Sequence record: NC_019410.1
Length of the DNA: 64,000 nt
Direction: 5' to 3' (one strand)
The first letter of the stretch is position 1. Each line of letters starts with the position of its first letter. The notes under the pieces are model-generated. The model saw only the letters and a program-made list of their open reading frames with translations. It did not search any database and had not been told where the DNA came from. The translations under genes and the position numbers were made by a program. Positions 16,496 to 42,880 of the stretch are shown piece after piece.

Positions 16496-16511
16496 GTCGT
16501 GAATCTTGACA
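16496..16511 (+). promoter_or_regulatory. Recurrent motif GTCGTGAATCTTGACA upstream of the lysis cassette
   Basis: Intergenic consensus copy. Confidence 0.65.
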
Positions 16512-16569: not shown

Positions 16570-17211
16570 ATGCGTGTCTCCGACACCGGCCTGAAGCTGA
16601 TCCAGGCCTGGGAAGGCCTTGGTGACGGGAACCCCGCCACGGTCGACCTGGAGCCCTATGTCTGCCCGGCCAAGGTCTGGACGGTCGGTTGGGGGCACGC
16701 CCTGAAGACGCCGACCGGTCAGATCATCGACGTCGACGTCTTCGGCGCCGCCAGGGCCAAGGTCCTGGCGGCCGAATCCATGCAGCGCAAGTTTGGCAAG
16801 GGCGCGATCACCCGTGATCAGGCCGTCGCCCTGCTGCGCGAGGATGTCACGGGCTTCGAGCGCTCGGTCGACAAGATGATCGGCGCGGCCGGCGCCACCC
16901 AGGCCCAGTTCGACGCCCTGGTCTCGTTCGCCTTCAACTGCGGTTCGGCAAACCTCCAGTCCTCGACCCTCCTGCGCCTGCACAACGCCGGCAAGCGCGC
17001 GGTGGGCGATGTGTCGATGTCGGCGCTCTGCAAGGAGAGCAAGCTCTCCACGCCGATCGGCAACATCGCCGTGGCCTTCTCGCGCTGGAACAAGGTCAAC
17101 AAGGTCTGGGCGCTGGGACTGTTCCGCCGCCGGCTGTCCGAGGTCCTGGTCTATGGCGGGCATAATCCCGACGAGGCGGTCAAGGCCGCCCAGGGCTTCA
17201 AGGGCTGCTGA
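16570..17211 (+). CDS. Endolysin, GH24 (T4-lysozyme-like)
   Basis: LI..WEG...Y.CPA.VWTVGWG and QFDALVSFAFNCG motifs. Confidence 0.9.
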   Translation: MRVSDTGLKLIQAWEGLGDGNPATVDLEPYVCPAKVWTVGWGHALKTPTGQIIDVDVFGAARAKVLAAESMQRKFGKGAITRDQAVALLREDVTGFERSVDKMIGAAGATQAQFDALVSFAFNCGSANLQSSTLLRLHNAGKRAVGDVSMSALCKESKLSTPIGNIAVAFSRWNKVNKVWALGLFRRRLSEVLVYGGHNPDEAVKAAQGFKGC

Positions 17212-17213
17212 TC

Positions 17214-17702
17214 ATGAGCCTGTTCGGTGTCATCGCCCTGGCCTGGAAGTTCTTCCTCAACCCGGCTGTCATGGGCGTCGTCTTCGCGGCGATCGCCGCC
17301 CTGACGGGATTGTGGCTGCTGGGCGGCCCGGTCCTGTTCTGGAAGGTGGTGCGCGACGCGCGCCTCTGGCTCGTCGTCGCCTGCGCGGCGGTGCTCTTCG
17401 GCTACGCCCATCTCCAGACCAAGCTCGAAAAGGCCGAGCAGCGCCTGGAGGAGATCGCCGACCAGAAGCAGGCCCATGACGACGGCCAGGAGGTCGTCAA
17501 GAACAACATCAAAAAGCAGGTCAAGCGCGCCAAGCAGGCGGCCAAGTACCAAGAGGTTATTCACGATGCCCCGACTGGCGAAAAGCTCGACGCGCTCCTC
17601 GACGAGTTCGCGCGTGATCAAGGCGGTGCTGCTCCCGTCCCTGGTGATGCTCAGCCTGACCCTGGCGGCGTGTCAAACCGTCCCGGTCGGGTTCTCCCCT
17701 GA
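17214..17702 (+). CDS. Inner-membrane spanin (Rz-like)
   Basis: Hydrophobic N-terminal segments followed by a coiled coil; overlapped by a lipoprotein gene. Confidence 0.7.
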   Translation: MSLFGVIALAWKFFLNPAVMGVVFAAIAALTGLWLLGGPVLFWKVVRDARLWLVVACAAVLFGYAHLQTKLEKAEQRLEEIADQKQAHDDGQEVVKNNIKKQVKRAKQAAKYQEVIHDAPTGEKLDALLDEFARDQGGAAPVPGDAQPDPGGVSNRPGRVLP

Positions 17703-17955
17703 CGACCTCTATCCCAAGGAACTGCGGACCTGCGCGCCCGCGCCGCAGGTTCCCCCGCGCCCCGCGCCCGGCGCGCCCCGCCCCGAGGACGTCCAGGCCG
17801 GCTACGTCAAGGATGACCATCTCGCCGGCGCCGACTGCCGCGACAAGGTCGAATCCTGGAACGAGCGGGCCGTCAAGTACGAGGCCCAGTACAAGGCCAT
17901 GAACGCCGGCCCGGTCGGCAAGTTCTTCAGCAAGCTCAAGGGGAAGACGCAGTGA
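17566..17955 (+). CDS. Outer-membrane lipoprotein spanin (Rz1-like)
   Basis: GAGG RBS at 17553 before ATG 17566; lipobox LTLAAC; Pro-rich mature region; overlaps the 3' end of the i-spanin. Confidence 0.75.
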   Translation: MPRLAKSSTRSSTSSRVIKAVLLPSLVMLSLTLAACQTVPVGFSPDDLYPKELRTCAPAPQVPPRPAPGAPRPEDVQAGYVKDDHLAGADCRDKVESWNERAVKYEAQYKAMNAGPVGKFFSKLKGKTQ

Positions 17956-18431
17956 CGCCGCCCTGGATCGCCGCGCCGCTGCGGGTCTGCGGCAACTTCT
18001 TTCGCTGGGTCCGCCTGACCCTGGACACGCTCTGCGATCGCCCTGACCACCTCCAGCGCCTGTCGATCATCGGCTCGGGCATGGCGGCCTTCCCGCTGAT
18101 CATCGGGATCATCGCGATCCTGGTGCATTTCGGCCTGCACGGGCCGGACAGCGCCGCCGCCCTGGCGACCATCCCGATCATCGGCAACATGGGCTATGGC
18201 GCCCTGGCGCTCTACGCCCTCTCCCAGGTGGCGCTCCTGGGGATCATCAAGGGCGTGCGCCTTTCCGGTCCTGGCGGCGTCAATGTCGAGATCGAGACCA
18301 CCTCGGGCGATGGCGACGGCCTGTCCGACACCCACACCACGATCGTCGAGCGCGGCCGGCGTCACGGCCGCGATCACGATTGTGTCCCCAACCCTCAAGC
18401 CGGCTCTGGCGCCGGCGCTATCACGGAGTAG
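17952..18431 (+). CDS. Membrane protein, putative holin
   Basis: Two or more hydrophobic helices within the lysis cassette. Confidence 0.45.
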   Translation: MTPPWIAAPLRVCGNFFRWVRLTLDTLCDRPDHLQRLSIIGSGMAAFPLIIGIIAILVHFGLHGPDSAAALATIPIIGNMGYGALALYALSQVALLGIIKGVRLSGPGGVNVEIETTSGDGDGLSDTHTTIVERGRRHGRDHDCVPNPQAGSGAGAITE

Positions 18432-18436
18432 GGACC

Positions 18437-18610
18437 ATGCGCGAAGGCTTCATGCTGGAAGGCTATGGCGGTCTGAAGATCGGTCCGGGCGGCGGGGCTG
18501 ACCCGTACACGACCTTGGGCGACGGCGGCTCGGAAGGCTGCATCCCGGTCAAGGACGACATCTCCGGCGACAGCGGGACCGAGATCATCTCCCCGCTCGG
18601 CTATGGCTAA
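18437..18610 (+). CDS. Small hypothetical protein (57 aa)
   Basis: ATG 18437 follows GGAG/GGGA; last ORF of the lysis operon. Confidence 0.5.
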   Translation: MREGFMLEGYGGLKIGPGGGADPYTTLGDGGSEGCIPVKDDISGDSGTEIISPLGYG

Positions 18611-18630
18611 CCTTGCGACATAAGGTCGCA

Positions 18631-18670
18631 TGTCATGATCCTTGACAGAACGACGATCTTCGAGTATGGT
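18631..18670 (+). promoter_or_regulatory. Sigma70-type promoter: TTGACA (18642-47), N17, TATGGT (18665-70), embedded in a variant of the recurrent motif
   Basis: Consensus spacing; the motif variant reads TGTCATGATCCTTGACA. Confidence 0.7.
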
Positions 18671-18676
18671 CGCGGC

Positions 18677-18968
18677 TCTTCGACGGCATCCCACCGTCAC
18701 CCATGGCTCGCGACCCACCGTTCGCAGGGAGATGCTCGCGACCAAGGCGGTAGCCGGAACGACGCTAGGCTGCGAAGCCAAGCCTCCGGAACACGCAGCA
18801 GCCGGCTGGAACGCTAGGCCGTTACGTCCAAACGGGGCCAGGACCTGTGAGGCGAAAGCCGAAAGGCCCCACCACCCGACAAGGGTTCACGCGTGATGCG
18901 GAAGAGGGACGTCAGTCCTGAAGTGTCTCAGGTGCAGAAGGCCCGCCGGTTTCCCGGCGGGCCTTTTT
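18677..18968 (+). ncRNA. Unassigned structured ncRNA candidate (~290 nt)
   Basis: Has its own promoter and terminator, no credible ORF or RBS, and GNRA-capped hairpins; ends are approximate. Confidence 0.55.
18938..18968 (+). terminator. Rho-independent terminator
   Basis: AGGCCCGCCGG/CCGGCGGGCCT stem followed by TTTT. Confidence 0.85.
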
Positions 18969-18987
18969 CTGGTCTGGGGACTAGGAC

Positions 18988-19788
18988 TTAGTCGACCGCT
19001 TCCAGGCGCCGGCGCTTGGGCGCGCTCGCCGGCAGGGACGGGGCAAGATCGCCGATCTTGCCGACCACCTTGCCGAGGAACACGATCCGCTTGGGATCGA
19101 CGTCGACATGATCCTTCAGGTCGGCGCTATAGACCCGGAACGCGCCGCCCTTGGAGGGACGGGTGACGTGCGCGACCTGCATGACCTTGTCCAGGCCGTA
19201 GACGAACTCGCCGCCGGCGGTGCTGGGCTCGACGTCGCGGCGGACCACCGCCATGTCGCCCGGCTTGAGGCCAGGGGCGAAGTCGTGGATCGGGGCCAGG
19301 GCCAGATCGGTCGGCTCGGCCTCGAAGCGCTCGCGAAGCCAGTCGGGATCGAGGTTCCAGGTCCGGGCGCGCTTGAACTCGCCAAGGCGGCCTTTGAAGG
19401 TCACTTCCTCGACCGGGTTGGGCGCGCCGACCCCGAAGGTGATGTATTCGGGCGTCGTCTTCAGGACGTGGGCGATCTGCTCCAGCACGTCGATGTGCGG
19501 CTTGACGCTGTCGGACTCGTACATGATGTACGCCGTGCGCGCCAGCGGCCGGCGCTCGCCCGCCTGCTTCGGCTCCCAGCCCGGTTTGGTGCTGGAGTCC
19601 TTGCGGGAATTGCTCTGCTGGGTCAGGAAGATCATCTTGGCGACCTGTTCCTGAGTCAGGTCGAGGGCCTTCCGGCAGGCGGTGATCCGCTGCCCGATGG
19701 TCTGAGGATGCGCAAGATCGGCATCCTTGTGGATCAAGGAACGAGCGCGATGGGGCACCATCGGCTTCAGTTCGGCCACGGCTTGCAT
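18988..19788 (-). CDS. XRE-HTH / S24 peptidase (LexA/CI-like) repressor
   Basis: N-terminal HTH (RI...RKALDLTQEQVA...LEQIAHVLKTTPEYITFG) and a C-terminal S24-like domain (PGDMAVV...GKVVG). Confidence 0.75.
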   Translation of the reverse strand: MQAVAELKPMVPHRARSLIHKDADLAHPQTIGQRITACRKALDLTQEQVAKMIFLTQQSNSRKDSSTKPGWEPKQAGERRPLARTAYIMYESDSVKPHIDVLEQIAHVLKTTPEYITFGVGAPNPVEEVTFKGRLGEFKRARTWNLDPDWLRERFEAEPTDLALAPIHDFAPGLKPGDMAVVRRDVEPSTAGGEFVYGLDKVMQVAHVTRPSKGGAFRVYSADLKDHVDVDPKRIVFLGKVVGKIGDLAPSLPASAPKRRRLEAVD

Positions 19789-19965
19789 TTCGTTCTCCTC
19801 CGTCCGTCGGGAACCGCGTCATTCGGTGTCGGGGTAACACCTGACATTTGCGATGGTTCCACGCCGCAACGTTTCCTTGTCGAAATTGACAAAGAGGGGA
19901 TGTACACCCTCTTTGGCAACACATCAAGGCCAGAGATGAAAAAAGTTGTTAACCCGACTTAAGAC

Positions 19966-20649
19966 TCAGGCGCCGGTCGAGCCGAAGCCGCCCGCGCCCC
20001 GTTCGGTGTCGTCCAGGCTATCGACCTCGACGACCGGCACGATCAGGCACTGTTCGAGGATGATCTGGGCGATGCGATCGCCGGGCTTGATCTCCACGGT
20101 CTCCCCGAAGAAGGGCGCGCCGAAGACGTCGGCCTGCTTGCCGTGGTGGGTCAGGATGACCTTGACCTCGCCGGTGTAATCCTCGTCCACCACGCCGGCC
20201 AGGACCCCGATGCCCTTGACGCCCAGGCCCGAGCGCGGGGCGACGCGGGCGTAGGTTCCCTCGGGCGCGGTGATCGAGAGGCCCGTCGACAGCAGGGCGC
20301 GATCGCCGGGGTTCAGGCGCACCGTCTTCTCGCCGTCGTAATAGACGTCCAGGCCGGCGGCCTTGGGCGAGCCGCGCGTCGGGAGCTTGGCGGTTTGGGT
20401 CAGACGCTTGACCTTCAGAACCGGGCCGTCGTGCTGCATCTTGGTCAACCCCCTCGCCTCCTCCCAGGACAGAAACTGGACGTCGCGCGTGAAACGCCCG
20501 TAGAGCACGACGTTCTGATCGACGCCCGAGCGGACGTCCACCTCGATGCCGGCGCCCCGAAGGGCGTCGGCGAGGGTGTAGGCCTGCTCAGCTTGCGCAG
20601 CCCTTTGATAGAAGACGGTAGCTCGGCCGTAAAGGTGGGTCGGGGACAT
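19966..20649 (-). CDS. dut: dUTPase (trimeric type) with a ~70-aa N-terminal extension
   Basis: AAGLDV, PRSGLG, GVVDEDYTGE, GDRIAQ and RGAGGFGSTG motifs. Confidence 0.95.
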   Translation of the reverse strand: MSPTHLYGRATVFYQRAAQAEQAYTLADALRGAGIEVDVRSGVDQNVVLYGRFTRDVQFLSWEEARGLTKMQHDGPVLKVKRLTQTAKLPTRGSPKAAGLDVYYDGEKTVRLNPGDRALLSTGLSITAPEGTYARVAPRSGLGVKGIGVLAGVVDEDYTGEVKVILTHHGKQADVFGAPFFGETVEIKPGDRIAQIILEQCLIVPVVEVDSLDDTERGAGGFGSTGA

Positions 20650-40536: not shown

Positions 40537-40625
40537 TGGAGCTTCGGGAGGGACTCGAACCCTCATAGGTGTTCCCACCAGCAGAGATTTGCAATCCCGC
40601 GCCTAACCTCTCAGTCCACCGAAGC
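40537..40625 (-). tRNA. tRNA-Cys(GCA) with a long (class II-like) variable arm
   Basis: Acceptor GCTTCGG/CCGAAGC, U73, encoded CCA, anticodon loop TT-GCA-AA, variable arm GGTG-GGAA-CACC, T arm GAGGG-TTCGAGT-CCCTC. Confidence 0.85.
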
Positions 40626-40809
40626 ACAAAAGGACCTCGACGCCCGAAGGCCCGAGGTCCGATCCGTAACCAGGGGAGGGCCGTAGCTGTCCCCTGACCC
40701 TGAACGACAGGTGGCGGGCTTGGTCGTCATCCCGTCAGGCTCGCGGCGCCGCTCGCCTGAACCGCCGATATGCCACGAGGGCAGTGATCCGCAGGTCCCC
40801 ACAAATAGC

Positions 40810-40844
40810 AAAAAGGCCACGATCCGCGAGGACCGTGGCCTTTT
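40810..40844 (-). terminator. Rho-independent terminator closing the GOLLD-like RNA
   Basis: AAAAGGCCACG...CGTGGCCTTTTT on the minus strand. Confidence 0.85.
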
Positions 40845-40845
40845 C

Positions 40846-41722
40846 GTTTTCCGATGGGCTGAGACTACACCCATCAGCAATCCCGCTTCGAGGATTATTC
40901 CCCAGGTGCGACCCCAGGTATTCCCTCGACGTCCACCAGACCCCTTGCGGTAGTCCAGTCCGAGATCATCGCCGCCGTTCTTGCGCACCCCGAAGGGATT
41001 GCGGGTCTGGCGTTTGACCCATCATGGCGAACTACTCGACAGTTCCTTCCCCGCTGGGCTTGCGACCCACTCACCGGCGCTAACCGGCTGACGAAGCTCT
41101 TCCTATCGACACCTCGCGGGCTTGCGACCCTTGAGATGACTCCGTTACCCGAAGGCCGGAGCATTTGGCGACTTACGTCCGCCACTGGACCAGTCTTTGC
41201 GTTTTTCATCGAAGCGGGGATTGAACCCGCGACCGACAGCTTAAGAGGCTGTTGCACTACCACTGTGCTATTCGCAAACCCACCAAGACGTGCTGGTCCA
41301 GTTGTTCCCAGAGCTTTTGACCCCGGAAATGCAACACGCCTCATATCTTTCGCCTTGCGGGCTACTCGACTGCTCTTCAGGACTCCGTCTCCCCCAACCT
41401 TTCGGCCAGGATGCCCAGCACCCCTCGAACTGAAGCAAAGCTCTTCACCGCGAAGTGTCGAACCCTGCAACCCAAACGGTTATCCGTACTCCCTAGACAC
41501 GCTTGCACGGGATAGTCCGCTTGCGACGGACTGGCGGTTAAAGCCTCGGAGTTACCCCGGCCCCGCCTTGTCTCCCACGGTCTTCAGGTCTATCCCCTTT
41601 TGCAAGAGGCGGCCAGCTTCCCAGCCCGGACCCGTCGGCTTCCTCTGTCCTCTTGCGAGGTCGGGCGGCCTATGGGAGACCGTCCCTGTCACCCCGTCGC
41701 CGGGGCTTTCGTCAGAAGCGAC
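40846..41722 (-). ncRNA. GOLLD-like giant ornate RNA (~870 nt)
   Basis: Size, tRNA association, an embedded tRNA, GAGUA E-loop motifs, repeated GCAA tetraloops, and 3' motifs GAGCUUCGUCAGC and GGUGUAGUCUCA recalled from GOLLD; has its own promoter and terminator. Ends are approximate. Confidence 0.78.
41206..41277 (-). tRNA. tRNA-Lys(CTT)-like element embedded in the GOLLD-like RNA; acceptor stem broken, no CCA
   Basis: D arm GCAC-AGTGGTA-GTGC, anticodon arm ACAGC-CT CTT AA-GCTGT, T arm GCGGG-TTCAATC-CCCGC; acceptor TTGCGAA/TTCGATG has only 4 Watson-Crick pairs. Confidence 0.8.
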
Positions 41723-41728
41723 GATGAC

Positions 41729-41757
41729 GTTCTAGCGACAGCCCACGTCGTCGTCAA
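41729..41757 (-). promoter_or_regulatory. Caulobacter sigma73-type promoter TTGACG-N15-GCTAGAAC for the GOLLD-like RNA
   Basis: Matches the recalled Caulobacter housekeeping consensus TTGACGS...GCTANAWC. Confidence 0.75.
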
Positions 41758-41813
41758 CGACTTTTTCCGTCTCGATGTCGAATTTTTTCGACAGTCGTGG
41801 ATGACGACAGTGC

Positions 41814-41841
41814 TTGACATTCTCGTAAGCCCATGCTAGGT
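41814..41841 (+). promoter_or_regulatory. Promoter TTGACA-N15-GCTAGG for the tmRNA
   Basis: Divergent from the GOLLD promoter. Confidence 0.65.
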
Positions 41842-41844
41842 GTC

Positions 41845-42225
41845 GGAAATCGTTGTAATTCGGACAACGGAACTGGCGGCAAGACAGGGGTGCGAATCCC
41901 CTCGCCTCCACCATCGACGCCCGGCGCTGGGAGTACGCGACTCCTGGGCAGGGAGTGTTACCCTGGCGGGCTGCGGCCCGAGCCAAAGGTAGCCGGGCGT
42001 CGTTGATGGGGGCGACTAGCTTTCGATTGGCGCTCGGGACTGAAAGACGCAACGGTGGGTGACCTCCACATCGGCTTGCCGGTGATCGGGTCAGGCAACA
42101 GTAAATGTCGCCGACAATGACAACGACGTCGTGGCTTTCGCCTCGGCTCGTGAAGCCATCGCCGCCTAATAAGCGGTAGAGGAGCCCGCCGGGAGCTTGG
42201 CAACAGAATCCCGGCAACCCCCTTT
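41845..42225 (+). ncRNA. ssrA: Circularly permuted (two-piece, alphaproteobacterial-type) tmRNA; tag ADNDNDVVAFASAREAIAA
   Basis: The acceptor piece ends T arm-CGCCTCC-A-CCA at 41913. The coding piece starts GGGGGCG at 42008, giving a G3:U70 Ala identity pair. The tag ORF at 42110-42169 ends in AA followed by TAATAA. Confidence 0.92.
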
Positions 42226-42350
42226 CGCAGGCGGGAACACCAACAGGCGATCTGTCGGGCGACCGATTTCCGATCCGTGTTCCCGTCTTCGAAAGGTGGT
42301 CAGGCCTACCCTCTTGGTGTGCTATCCAAGGGTCTGGCCACTTTACAGAA

Positions 42351-42429
42351 CGCGGGGTAGAGGAGTCCGGTTGTCCTCGTCTGGCTCATAACCAGGAGAT
42401 CGTGGGTTCAAATCCCACTCCCGCTCCCA
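42351..42429 (+). tRNA. tRNA-fMet(CAT)-like
   Basis: CGCGGGG 5' end with a C1:U72 mismatch, CTCATAA loop, TTCAAAT T loop and encoded CCA. Confidence 0.88.
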
Positions 42430-42510
42430 ATGCGAACGCCGGCTGTTGAGAACGACGGCGTGACAAGCTCGGAGAGAACGAGCACTCCAGTCCGGGGTAT
42501 GAGGCCGGAC

Positions 42511-42707
42511 TAGCGGACGCCGTAGCGATTGCAGGCGTGACACCCGGAGATAGCGGGACCGGCTTTCCGAGCCGCATGCTCGGCGCGTAAGACCGCAGGC
42601 CTCGGCCATCGGGCAGTGTCAGGGGATGAGGCTAGTCCTCGGCTAACCACCTAGCGGTGAAGCTAGGGCATGCGGTTCGGAAAGCCGGGTTCGCGGTTCG
42701 TCCGCTA
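42511..42707 (+). ncRNA. Unassigned structured RNA with a 27-bp stem and multibranch loop
   Basis: 42553-79 pairs with 42668-94 (26 of 27 positions, 3 GU); outer helix 42511-19/42699-707. Confidence 0.55.
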
Positions 42708-42708
42708 C

Positions 42709-42790
42709 GAGATGGAGATGTCGCCGGTTCGAGTCCGGCAGGTCCCCCAAAAGGAGGCCTTAGCTCAGTCGGTAGAGCGCTCCTATCCCA
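42709..42790 (+). ncRNA. YrlA-like Y RNA / circularly permuted tRNA mimic
   Basis: The order is stem 5' strand, T arm (TTCGAGT), acceptor-like hairpin closed by CAAAA, D arm (AGTCGGTA), stem 3' strand. Confidence 0.7.
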
Positions 42791-42795
42791 CCTTT

Positions 42796-42880
42796 GGTAC
42801 GGTGGCTCGACAGGTAAGGCATCGGCCTCATAAGCCGAGGGTTCGTCCCAATCCTGGTTCAAATCCAGGTCGTACCTCCA
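42796..42880 (+). tRNA. tRNA with CAT anticodon, long variable arm and U73 (Met/Ile2 identity uncertain)
   Basis: Acceptor GGTACGG/TCGTACC, anticodon arm TCGGC-CTCATAA-GCCGA, variable arm GGG-TTCGT-CCC, encoded CCA. Confidence 0.85.

Follow-up and report, generated by a model that had tools for sequence, protein, structure and literature searches.

The 64,000-nt stretch of record NC_019410.1 analyzed here (the window) comes from Caulobacter phage CcrKarma (Karma; JX100811), and window coordinates equal record coordinates minus 62,000. Between gp109, the small gene that closes the lysis cassette, and the convergent gene gp110 lies an unannotated gap of 377 bp, inside which the region 18631-18968 is located. 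Our comparisons strongly support the view that positions 18677-18968 on the + strand are the gene for a structured noncoding RNA of about 290 nt, and that this RNA belongs to an uncatalogued family of phiCbK-like phages (Dolichocephalovirinae) infecting Caulobacter and Brevundimonas. An earlier note on this DNA had proposed a stand-alone structured RNA gene, complete with promoter and terminator and lacking a credible open reading frame (ORF), which covariation among relatives and the breaks in the candidate ORFs bear out; the motifs that it quoted are all found where it placed them. No gene is annotated in the gap in any of 26 matching phiCbK-like records, and the terminator is annotated in three (Karma, Swift, and phiCbK). 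Literature searches returned no description of the element, which goes unmentioned in the phiCbK genomics paper of Gill et al. 2012 (PMC3556154) and in a transcriptomic study of phiCbK infection (PMC10688885), whose supplementary tables hold no usable phage-gene rows.

Conservation and covariation of the RNA

Folded alone, the Karma sequence has an ordinary energy (z = -1.0), so the evidence for structure comes from comparison. An alignment of ten phages (Shapirovirus, BL57, and Poindextervirus) shows no variation in either promoter hexamer or across most of 18680-18905. A 701-bp region is 74 to 81% identical between genera, with the helix-turn-helix (HTH) protein at about 81%, and the core of the RNA is more conserved than the flanking DNA. 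Structure is conserved as well, with helices that covary across lineages. We scored a 53-pair model on a plain MAFFT alignment that was not fitted to structure (A2): 99.7% of its cells are paired and seven pairs (18 cells) have changed on both sides, against at most 47% paired cells and zero or one two-sided change in slid controls. In an alignment of the core from 12 sequences, which was fitted to the model and is biased toward it for that reason, 97.8% of cells are paired and 13 pairs (30 cells) have changed on both sides; none of 500 shuffles reached the observed value, and slid controls gave 27 to 40% paired cells. The unconstrained minimum-free-energy fold of the 77-nt core of phage Gurke is exactly P2, P4/P3, and P5 (helix names as in Table 1). 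Several conserved G-U pairs are compatible with the + strand only, which argues for structure in RNA and not in DNA.

All lineages have in common A-UGG-C, the P2 stem-loop, CCA, A-R-GCGGUA, P3, ACACGC, and P5 with a UGGAA(C/A) loop, and all 12 aligned sequences keep the invariant words together with the covarying helices. Within P2, every cell is paired (100%) and four pairs have changed on both sides across the 12 sequences. At its apex, Karma has a 10-nt loop and the mini form of contig UViG_3300001199 has AGCA; the four jumbo phages (Gurke, Domovoi, Colossus, and PW) display a UGGAAN hexaloop there and carry another on P5. P3, all four pairs of which have changed on both sides across lineages, is either a plain tetraloop hairpin or extended as in Karma, and its extension P3b has two pairs that covary within Karma-type phages, GGCU-GNRA-AGCC becoming GGCC/GGUC or GACC/GGUC. 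The model pairs GCG (18747-18749) with CGC (18794-18796) as P4; the ACACGC form on its 3' side is found in 11 of the 12 sequences, Domovoi differing just in the alignment of the first A.

Outside the core, a hairpin stands at the P1 position in all other lineages, with unrelated sequences. A C-G pair of P6 is replaced by U-A, and P6b turns from GGC/GCC to GCC/GGC while its loop is exchanged from GNRA to UUCG, which supports the GGGGC/GCCCC stem enclosing GGC-GAAA-GCC that had been drawn from the Karma sequence. P7 has counterparts in Poindexterviruses (ACCUC-GAAA-GAGGU) and in Bajun (CCCCA-GACG-UGGGG). Pair changes in P8 run from A-U to C-G or G-C, from C-G to U-A, and from a G-U wobble (G-C in relatives) to A-U, and the hairpin also occurs as GGGCU-GAAA-AGCCC or with a GGGC/GCCC stem. 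The GAUGCGGRA part of the 3' block UCACGCGUGAUGCGGAAGA is common to Bajun, Colossus, PW, Gurke, and Domovoi and is not found in the mini form; 3' domains otherwise differ by lineage.

Other proposed pairings do not hold. An AGGAC/GTCCT pseudoknot suggested by the earlier note is broken in BL57 and BL10, and its GTCCT strand pairs locally with GGGAC (18906-18910); its CCTGA/TCAGG pairing is not kept in Poindexterviruses and overlaps the local P8 hairpin. A long-range pairing of the 5' end with GCCGGAACGA, given by RNAalifold, was rejected, as the UViG contig, Bajun, and the jumbo phages favor a local P3 after GCGGUA. Of the direct repeats that had been noticed, ACGCTAGGC is real and invariant in Karma-type phages, whereas the copies of GCTCGCGACC are opposite strands of helix P2, UCGCGA being self-complementary. 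The repeats that the earlier note had connected with a protein sponge are mostly strands of helices and not sponge sites.

Table 1. Features of the RNA gene of Karma and of its surroundings, with positions in the window
Feature	Position	Strand	Evidence or remark
Promoter: extended -35 element GTCATGATCC+TTGACA, -10 hexamer TATGGT	18632-18670	+	Hexamers invariant in 10 phages
Predicted transcript, ~290 nt	18677-18968	+	Start placed ~7 nt past the -10 hexamer, end placed in the U run
P1, 5' hairpin GACGG-CAUCCCA-CCGUC	18682-18698	+	-6.9 kcal/mol, z = -3.3; invariant in Karma-type phages
P2: UGG, bulged C, UCGCGA, apical CCC..GGG with 10-nt loop, UCGCGA-CCA	18704-18744	+
Junction A-R-GCGGUA-N, invariant	18745-18753	+	CCAARGCGGUA in 12/12 aligned sequences
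P3 (CCGG/CCGG) with Karma-type extensions P3a and P3b (GGCU-GNRA-AGCC, 18764-18783)	18754-18789	+
ACACGC, 3' strand of P4 and one side of an internal loop	18790-18796	+	CACGC in 12/12 aligned sequences
P5 hairpin with hexaloop UGGAAC (18807-18812)	18801-18819	+	Three pairs changed on both sides
P6 GGGGC/GCCCC with inner hairpin P6b GGC-GAAA-GCC (18851-18860)	18834-18870	+
P7 hairpin ACCC-GACAA-GGGU	18874-18886	+	Three alignable pairs invariant
Conserved 3' block UCACGCGUGAUGCGGAAGA	18887-18905	+	Shared-word comparison, alignment
P8 hairpin GGGAC-GUCA-GUCCU	18906-18919	+	Three pairs changed on both sides
Intrinsic terminator: 14-bp stem, UUUC loop, U5 tail, facing the 3' end of gp110	18936-18968	+	Stem covaries between lineages
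Lysis cassette: endolysin gp105, i-spanin gp106, o-spanin gp107, holin gp108	16570-18431	+	GenBank JX100811
gp109, 57-aa Gly-rich small ORF closing the lysis cassette	18437-18610	+
Inverted repeat TGCGAC-N5-GTCGCA between the gp109 stop and the RNA promoter	18614-18634	+	Stem invariant, loop varies (10 phages)
gp110, convergent XRE-family HTH protein, not part of the RNA	18988-19788	-	Pfam HTH_3, E = 2.6e-7

Homologues and extent of the family

An nhmmer search, as the earlier note had recommended, picked up a homologue of roughly 400 nt in the Brevundimonas phage Bajun (E = 2e-11). Another, a mini version of some 150 nt with a TTGACA-N16-TATGGT promoter and a terminator of its own, lies in the flank of an HTH homologue on IMG/VR contig UViG_3300001199. 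We built a covariance model (R1) of the core (18700-18822, 32 pairs) from six sequences including Karma, which scores 150.9 bits as one of the sequences used for building. R1 recovers the Bajun and UViG_3300001199 versions, and when run on whole genomes it also detected a single clear copy in each of Colossus, PW, Gurke, and Domovoi (E values of 6e-6 to 2e-3); across the covariance models R1 and R2, E values for the homologues in Bajun, UViG_3300001199, Colossus, PW, Gurke, and Domovoi range from 1e-8 to 1e-2. By blastn, the Domovoi form also occurs in Kabachok, Papperlapapp, Bambus, Marchewka, and Kikimora. The Bertelyviruses (CcrBL9, CcrSC, and C2) and UViG_3300025924 gave no convincing match to the core.

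The carriers found are thus Shapirovirus, Poindextervirus, BL57, Colossusvirus, four tested phages of Brevundimonas (Bajun, Gurke, and Domovoi, with Kikimora by blastn), and one IMG/VR contig. Members of the family range from about 150 to 600 nt, a length set by lineage-specific peripheral hairpins and 3' domains. When we ran two conserved-block patterns against IMG/VR, JGI metagenomes, and GTDB genomes, nothing came back but the known phages and chance coding matches (in a transposase and an unrelated ORF, for example). The result points to a narrow distribution, on scans for exact patterns that would miss divergent members.

Two side observations bear on distribution. In Domovoi and Gurke, some 90 nt of the RNA's 3' domain have 81 to 84% identity with an unannotated stretch in the tRNA cluster of CcrBL9 and CcrSC (MH588546 80934-81027 and MH588547 80431-80515), phages without the 5' core; the stretch looks like a mobile RNA module common to different phage RNAs. 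Five wastewater runs (X5 to X9), labelled RNA-Seq, an RNA type that is a guess and may be DNA, hold 12 to 33% of the sampled words of window positions 18437-19100, so relatives of the Karma locus occur in wastewater.

Transcription unit and coding potential

Transcription of the RNA appears to begin at a host-type promoter of its own and to stop at an intrinsic terminator. As the earlier note had read it, the promoter is TTGACA (18642-18647), a 17-nt spacer, and TATGGT (18665-18670), which is near consensus and stands within a phage motif, the GTCGTGAATCTTGACA family. It is the sole sigma-70-like site within 18000-20000, for which shuffled sequences give an expectation of 0.2. Equivalent TTGACA-N16/17-TATAAT-like promoters precede the homologues of the UViG contig, Colossus, PW, Gurke, and Domovoi; Bajun keeps TTGACA and has a poor -10 hexamer. 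At the other end, the G+C hairpin at 18936-18967 overlaps a UUUUU run (18964-18968) and folds at -28.5 kcal/mol (z = -6.2), in keeping with the strong terminator that had been proposed. The transcript ends at 18677 and 18968 are predictions from this promoter and this terminator.

The GTCGTGAATCTTGACA family is a phage-wide promoter motif with 31 matches at no more than three mismatches in the Karma genome, the promoter of the lysis cassette among them. Sites of the family include window positions 16496, 18632, 25082, 32152, and 39836, and their -10 elements are of several types, TAGGGT-like and TTAACCATG-like for example, which suggests promoter classes with one common upstream element.

The 60-aa and 84-aa ORFs reported for the region exist and are intact in all five Shapiroviruses; both begin no later than the -35 hexamer, ahead of the predicted start of transcription. 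Stops or frameshifts break the 60-aa ORF in BL57 and Rogue and the 84-aa ORF in BL57, BL10, RBC63, and BL64. Variable sites, 79 in number, fall 24/26/29 by codon phase and have no periodicity, and indels are of 1 to 2 nt. No conserved ORF was found in this region across the aligned relatives.

Comparison with known RNA families

We ran the covariance search that the earlier note had asked for, scanning the whole window against Rfam 15 with cmscan at the gathering score and positions 18500-19100 at E values up to 10. No family matched the Karma RNA or its homologues at the gathering score or at permissive E values, and these negatives include OLE, Y RNA, 6S, SRP, Csr/Rsm, and the known riboswitches and ribozymes. 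Below threshold, just terminator-like chance matches were seen, none of which recurs on the core of Karma, Colossus, PW, Gurke, and Domovoi. Likenesses of single words to SRP 4.5S, c-di-GMP-I, 5S, and boxA were dropped, as Rfam gave no match to them.

OLE RNA (RF01071), part of whose 3' domain had seemed to resemble the Karma sequence, was rejected, with no match at the gathering score or at E values up to 10. OLE is about 600 nt long and is associated with the oapA, oapB, and oapC genes in Firmicutes. Both are sizeable, ornate, stand-alone RNAs of bacterial type with many hairpins. However, the Karma RNA occurs in alphaproteobacterial phages and not in anaerobic Firmicutes, it adjoins a lysis cassette and an XRE HTH gene without genes for ole-associated proteins, and the OLE-like words fall in its lineage-variable hairpins.

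GOLLD and ROOL, like the Karma RNA, are encoded by phages, highly structured, of unknown or structural function, and conserved within a phage lineage. The Karma RNA differs from them in matching neither by sequence or structure in Rfam, in being much smaller than GOLLD, and in adjoining lysis genes outside the tRNA/RNA island. That island of Karma, at window positions 40540-42877, holds Rfam matches to GOLLD itself (40856-41342, - strand, 171 bits), a permuted tmRNA (41851-42169, + strand), and four tRNA-like elements. The pRNA of phi29, another phage-encoded RNA, is restricted to phi29-like podophages and lies near a genome end.

Genomic neighborhood

A position after the lysis cassette, which the earlier note had pointed out in Karma, is a conserved feature of the RNA: in every lineage found, the RNA is downstream of the lysis genes in the same orientation, and in six it adjoins them directly. 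In Karma the cassette is directly upstream, and Colossus, Gurke, Domovoi, Bajun, and UViG_3300001199 likewise have the RNA in the lysis neighborhood. On the UViG contig, a gene of the CCA-adding enzyme/poly(A) polymerase family (L041:3880-5094, + strand) is inserted between the lysis genes and the RNA on the opposite strand and is divergent from the promoter of the mini RNA.

Immediately upstream in Karma, gp109 has no match in Pfam. It belongs to a family of Gly-rich peptides with repeated IGDGG(T/S)xC units and has homologues in Colossus, PW, and Bajun (L050:2894-3052; L011:4489-4680); it was rejected as an obligatory partner because the RNA of Gurke, Domovoi, and the UViG contig has no such gene beside it. 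The inverted repeat that follows gp109 occurs once in the window and folds at -8.5 kcal/mol, and different inverted repeats stand at the equivalent spot in Bajun, Colossus, and Gurke. It may be the 3' hairpin of the lysis mRNA or an operator. As this hairpin has no U tract, lysis transcripts probably run on into the RNA and end at its terminator.

Downstream, the RNA had been described as converging on a repressor gene. The gene is indeed convergent in Karma, but Pfam identifies gp110 as no more than an XRE-type HTH protein, and the arrangement is not universal. Karma-type phages, Bajun, and the UViG contig have the HTH gene as convergent neighbor. Colossus and PW have a Ro60/TROVE gene and a tRNA interposed between the RNA and the HTH gene, and in Gurke and Domovoi the HTH gene is 25 to 30 kb off, with the RNA still beside the lysis cassette. 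A link of the RNA to the HTH gene was rejected, as it is broken in Gurke and Domovoi, and so was a link to Ro60, which is broken in Domovoi. In Colossus, PW, and Domovoi, Ro60/TROVE-vWA proteins adjoin the HTH gene (JX100810 107047-109284; ON529855 226698-228083), and the two are set apart by a tRNA or by roughly 1 kb of sequence without annotation. This gap likely holds further noncoding RNAs; scanned with Rfam at the gathering score it gave no match, in a scan that missed the annotated tRNAs too.

Possible functions

The invariant nucleotides of this RNA lie in junctions and loops, the helices around them covary, and size varies through peripheral hairpins capped by tetraloops. Such a pattern is typically that of RNAs that bind a protein or a ligand (ribonucleoprotein or aptamer RNAs) rather than that of small RNAs (sRNAs) that act by seed pairing. 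On this pattern and on the doubled UGGAAN loop, we favor a reading that we hold tentatively and at rather less than an even chance, namely, that of a trans-acting scaffold or decoy that binds a protein. We infer a discrete trans-acting molecule whose invariant junction and UGGAAN hexaloop or hexaloops would form the recognition surface for an RNA-binding protein of host or phage, the variable helices merely holding this surface in place. Where two identical loops are displayed, the protein would probably be a dimer, and the doubling in four lineages would suit such a binder. Since lysis transcripts probably end in the RNA as well, its action may be tied to the late or lysis phase. Only the synteny with lysis genes, which survived a single rearrangement, suggests functional coupling to lysis. 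The earlier note had read the RNA as an sRNA or protein sponge perhaps involved in lysis timing; this is a reasonable hypothesis, and the hexaloop repeated in four lineages would fit protein binding.

Among characterized systems, the protein-sponge RNAs of the CsrB and RsmZ type invite comparison. The Karma RNA, like them, has its own promoter, an intrinsic terminator, and hairpin loops containing GGA (C-UGGAAC-G), and in four lineages it displays two such loops per molecule, which would suit a dimeric RNA-binding protein. It differs in having one or two loops and not many, in a junction core without counterpart in Csr/Rsm RNAs, and in the absence of a match to Rfam. CsrA is encoded in 40 of 201 sampled alphaproteobacterial genomes, a figure for the sample as a whole and not specific to the host.

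Several observations weigh against a protein-binding scaffold coupled to lysis or against parts of the evidence behind it. Fitting the core alignments A7 and A9 to the model inflates their share of paired cells, and P4 and the junction never vary, so that the pairing of P4 is neither supported nor refuted. The UGGAAC loop is present once in Karma-type phages, Bajun, and the UViG contig, and the doubling on P2 and P5 is thus not found in the Karma type; Karma also has no CsrA gene. The linkage to lysis amounts to synteny plus what is in effect one rearrangement (Gurke/Domovoi) and may be historical and not functional. As for expression, four RNA-seq runs of one 2023 study of phiCbK infection contain phiCbK-like sequence, in contigs (14 to 47 kb) that each span 17200-20200 unbroken and are uninformative on starts, ends, and strand.

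The strongest competitor, which we nonetheless consider unlikely, is a base-pairing sRNA. Its UGGAAC hexaloop would find GUUCCA-like sites in mRNAs of the host or the phage, and its A/U-rich linker together with the terminator would serve as an Hfq-type 3' module. A loop conserved in all lineages and doubled in four recalls redundant seed loops, the stand-alone layout of promoter and terminator is that of an sRNA gene, and in Karma UUCCA directly precedes the endolysin AUG. This UUCCA is not conserved before the endolysin start in Colossus, Domovoi, or Bajun, however, and pairing of the loop to the start regions of endolysin or other lysis genes was rejected for want of a conserved site. The invariant nucleotides, moreover, lie mostly in junctions and not in one single-stranded seed, and so ornate and size-variable an architecture would be unusual among seed sRNAs. 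sRNAs from 3' untranslated regions (UTRs), of the DapZ and MicL type with internal promoters, likewise sit at the 3' end of an operon with their own promoter and a terminator probably in common with the upstream mRNA, but the Karma RNA is wholly outside the coding region, longer, and far more structured, and no seed-target pair was identified.

The same position admits a role purely in cis, which we judge improbable: the element would be the 3' module of the lysis operon, a stabilizing or insulating 3' UTR with a terminator shared by convergent units and no function in trans. That the RNA follows the lysis cassette on the same strand in every lineage, that read-through past the gp109 hairpin is likely, and that five of seven lineages have a convergent gene opposite the RNA are all as expected of such a module. 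A dedicated promoter kept in each lineage (with the poor -10 hexamer of Bajun) is not, and invariant junction and loop sequences over more than 100 nt exceed what a stabilizer or terminator needs; in Colossus and PW, a terminator-like hairpin even stands between the lysis genes and the core.

We give still less credence to a ligand-sensing aptamer or a ribozyme, in which the junction would be a metabolite or ion pocket or a catalytic site. The core is compact (75 to 90 nt), with three helices around an invariant junction and a tolerance for peripheral insertions, as such an RNA might be. There is no downstream gene for it to control, however, as the next gene is convergent in most lineages; an antiterminator alternative was not seen, and no riboswitch or ribozyme of Rfam matched.

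A partnership with Ro60 (TROVE) protein after the manner of a Y RNA is very improbable. TROVE/Ro60 genes adjoin the RNA, in convergent orientation, in Colossus and PW, and the single bulged C of P2 loosely resembles the Ro-binding helix; both are points of likeness to Y RNAs of the YrlA type. Against this, Karma has no TROVE gene, the Ro60 gene of Domovoi sits by the HTH gene with the RNA about 25 kb off beside the lysis genes, and Gurke has by its HTH gene a similar candidate ORF of about 460 aa. The Karma RNA also lacks a tRNA-like module and a stem joining its 5' and 3' ends, and neither Y_RNA nor YrlA matched in Rfam. Least credible of all is a small-protein gene or a chance conservation of regulatory DNA, for although both ORFs are open in the five Shapiroviruses, their early starts, their breaks in relatives, the lack of codon periodicity, and the 1- to 2-nt indels speak against a protein, and compensatory pair changes that include G-U pairs indicate selection on RNA.

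Implications for phage biology

Beyond the scaffold or decoy reading itself, the RNA could be the first of a new class of ribonucleoprotein RNAs in phages, in which the three-helix core recruits or sequesters a protein and the output is coupled to the lysis module; we regard this wider proposal as possible but rather unlikely. Coupling to lysis, if true, could for example set the timing of lysis or protect late transcripts, and an RNA-level regulator of lysis of this kind would have no described counterpart. A conserved, lysis-linked RNA found across genera is a testable player for the biology of phage late genes and lysis. Caulobacter is a cell-cycle model with phiCbK as its standard phage, so infection time courses, RNA-seq data, and genetics are already at hand for such work, and the size series of the family (a 77-nt core, the 150-nt mini form, and forms of about 600 nt) offers a minimal construct for structural or binding studies.

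The phages concerned are already unusually rich in RNA functions, with GOLLD, tmRNA, tRNA mimics, and Ro60. Protein binding or control of lysis timing, if true, would make the RNA described here a new kind of phage regulatory RNA; without such a role, it would still be a well-supported new family and a candidate for Rfam.

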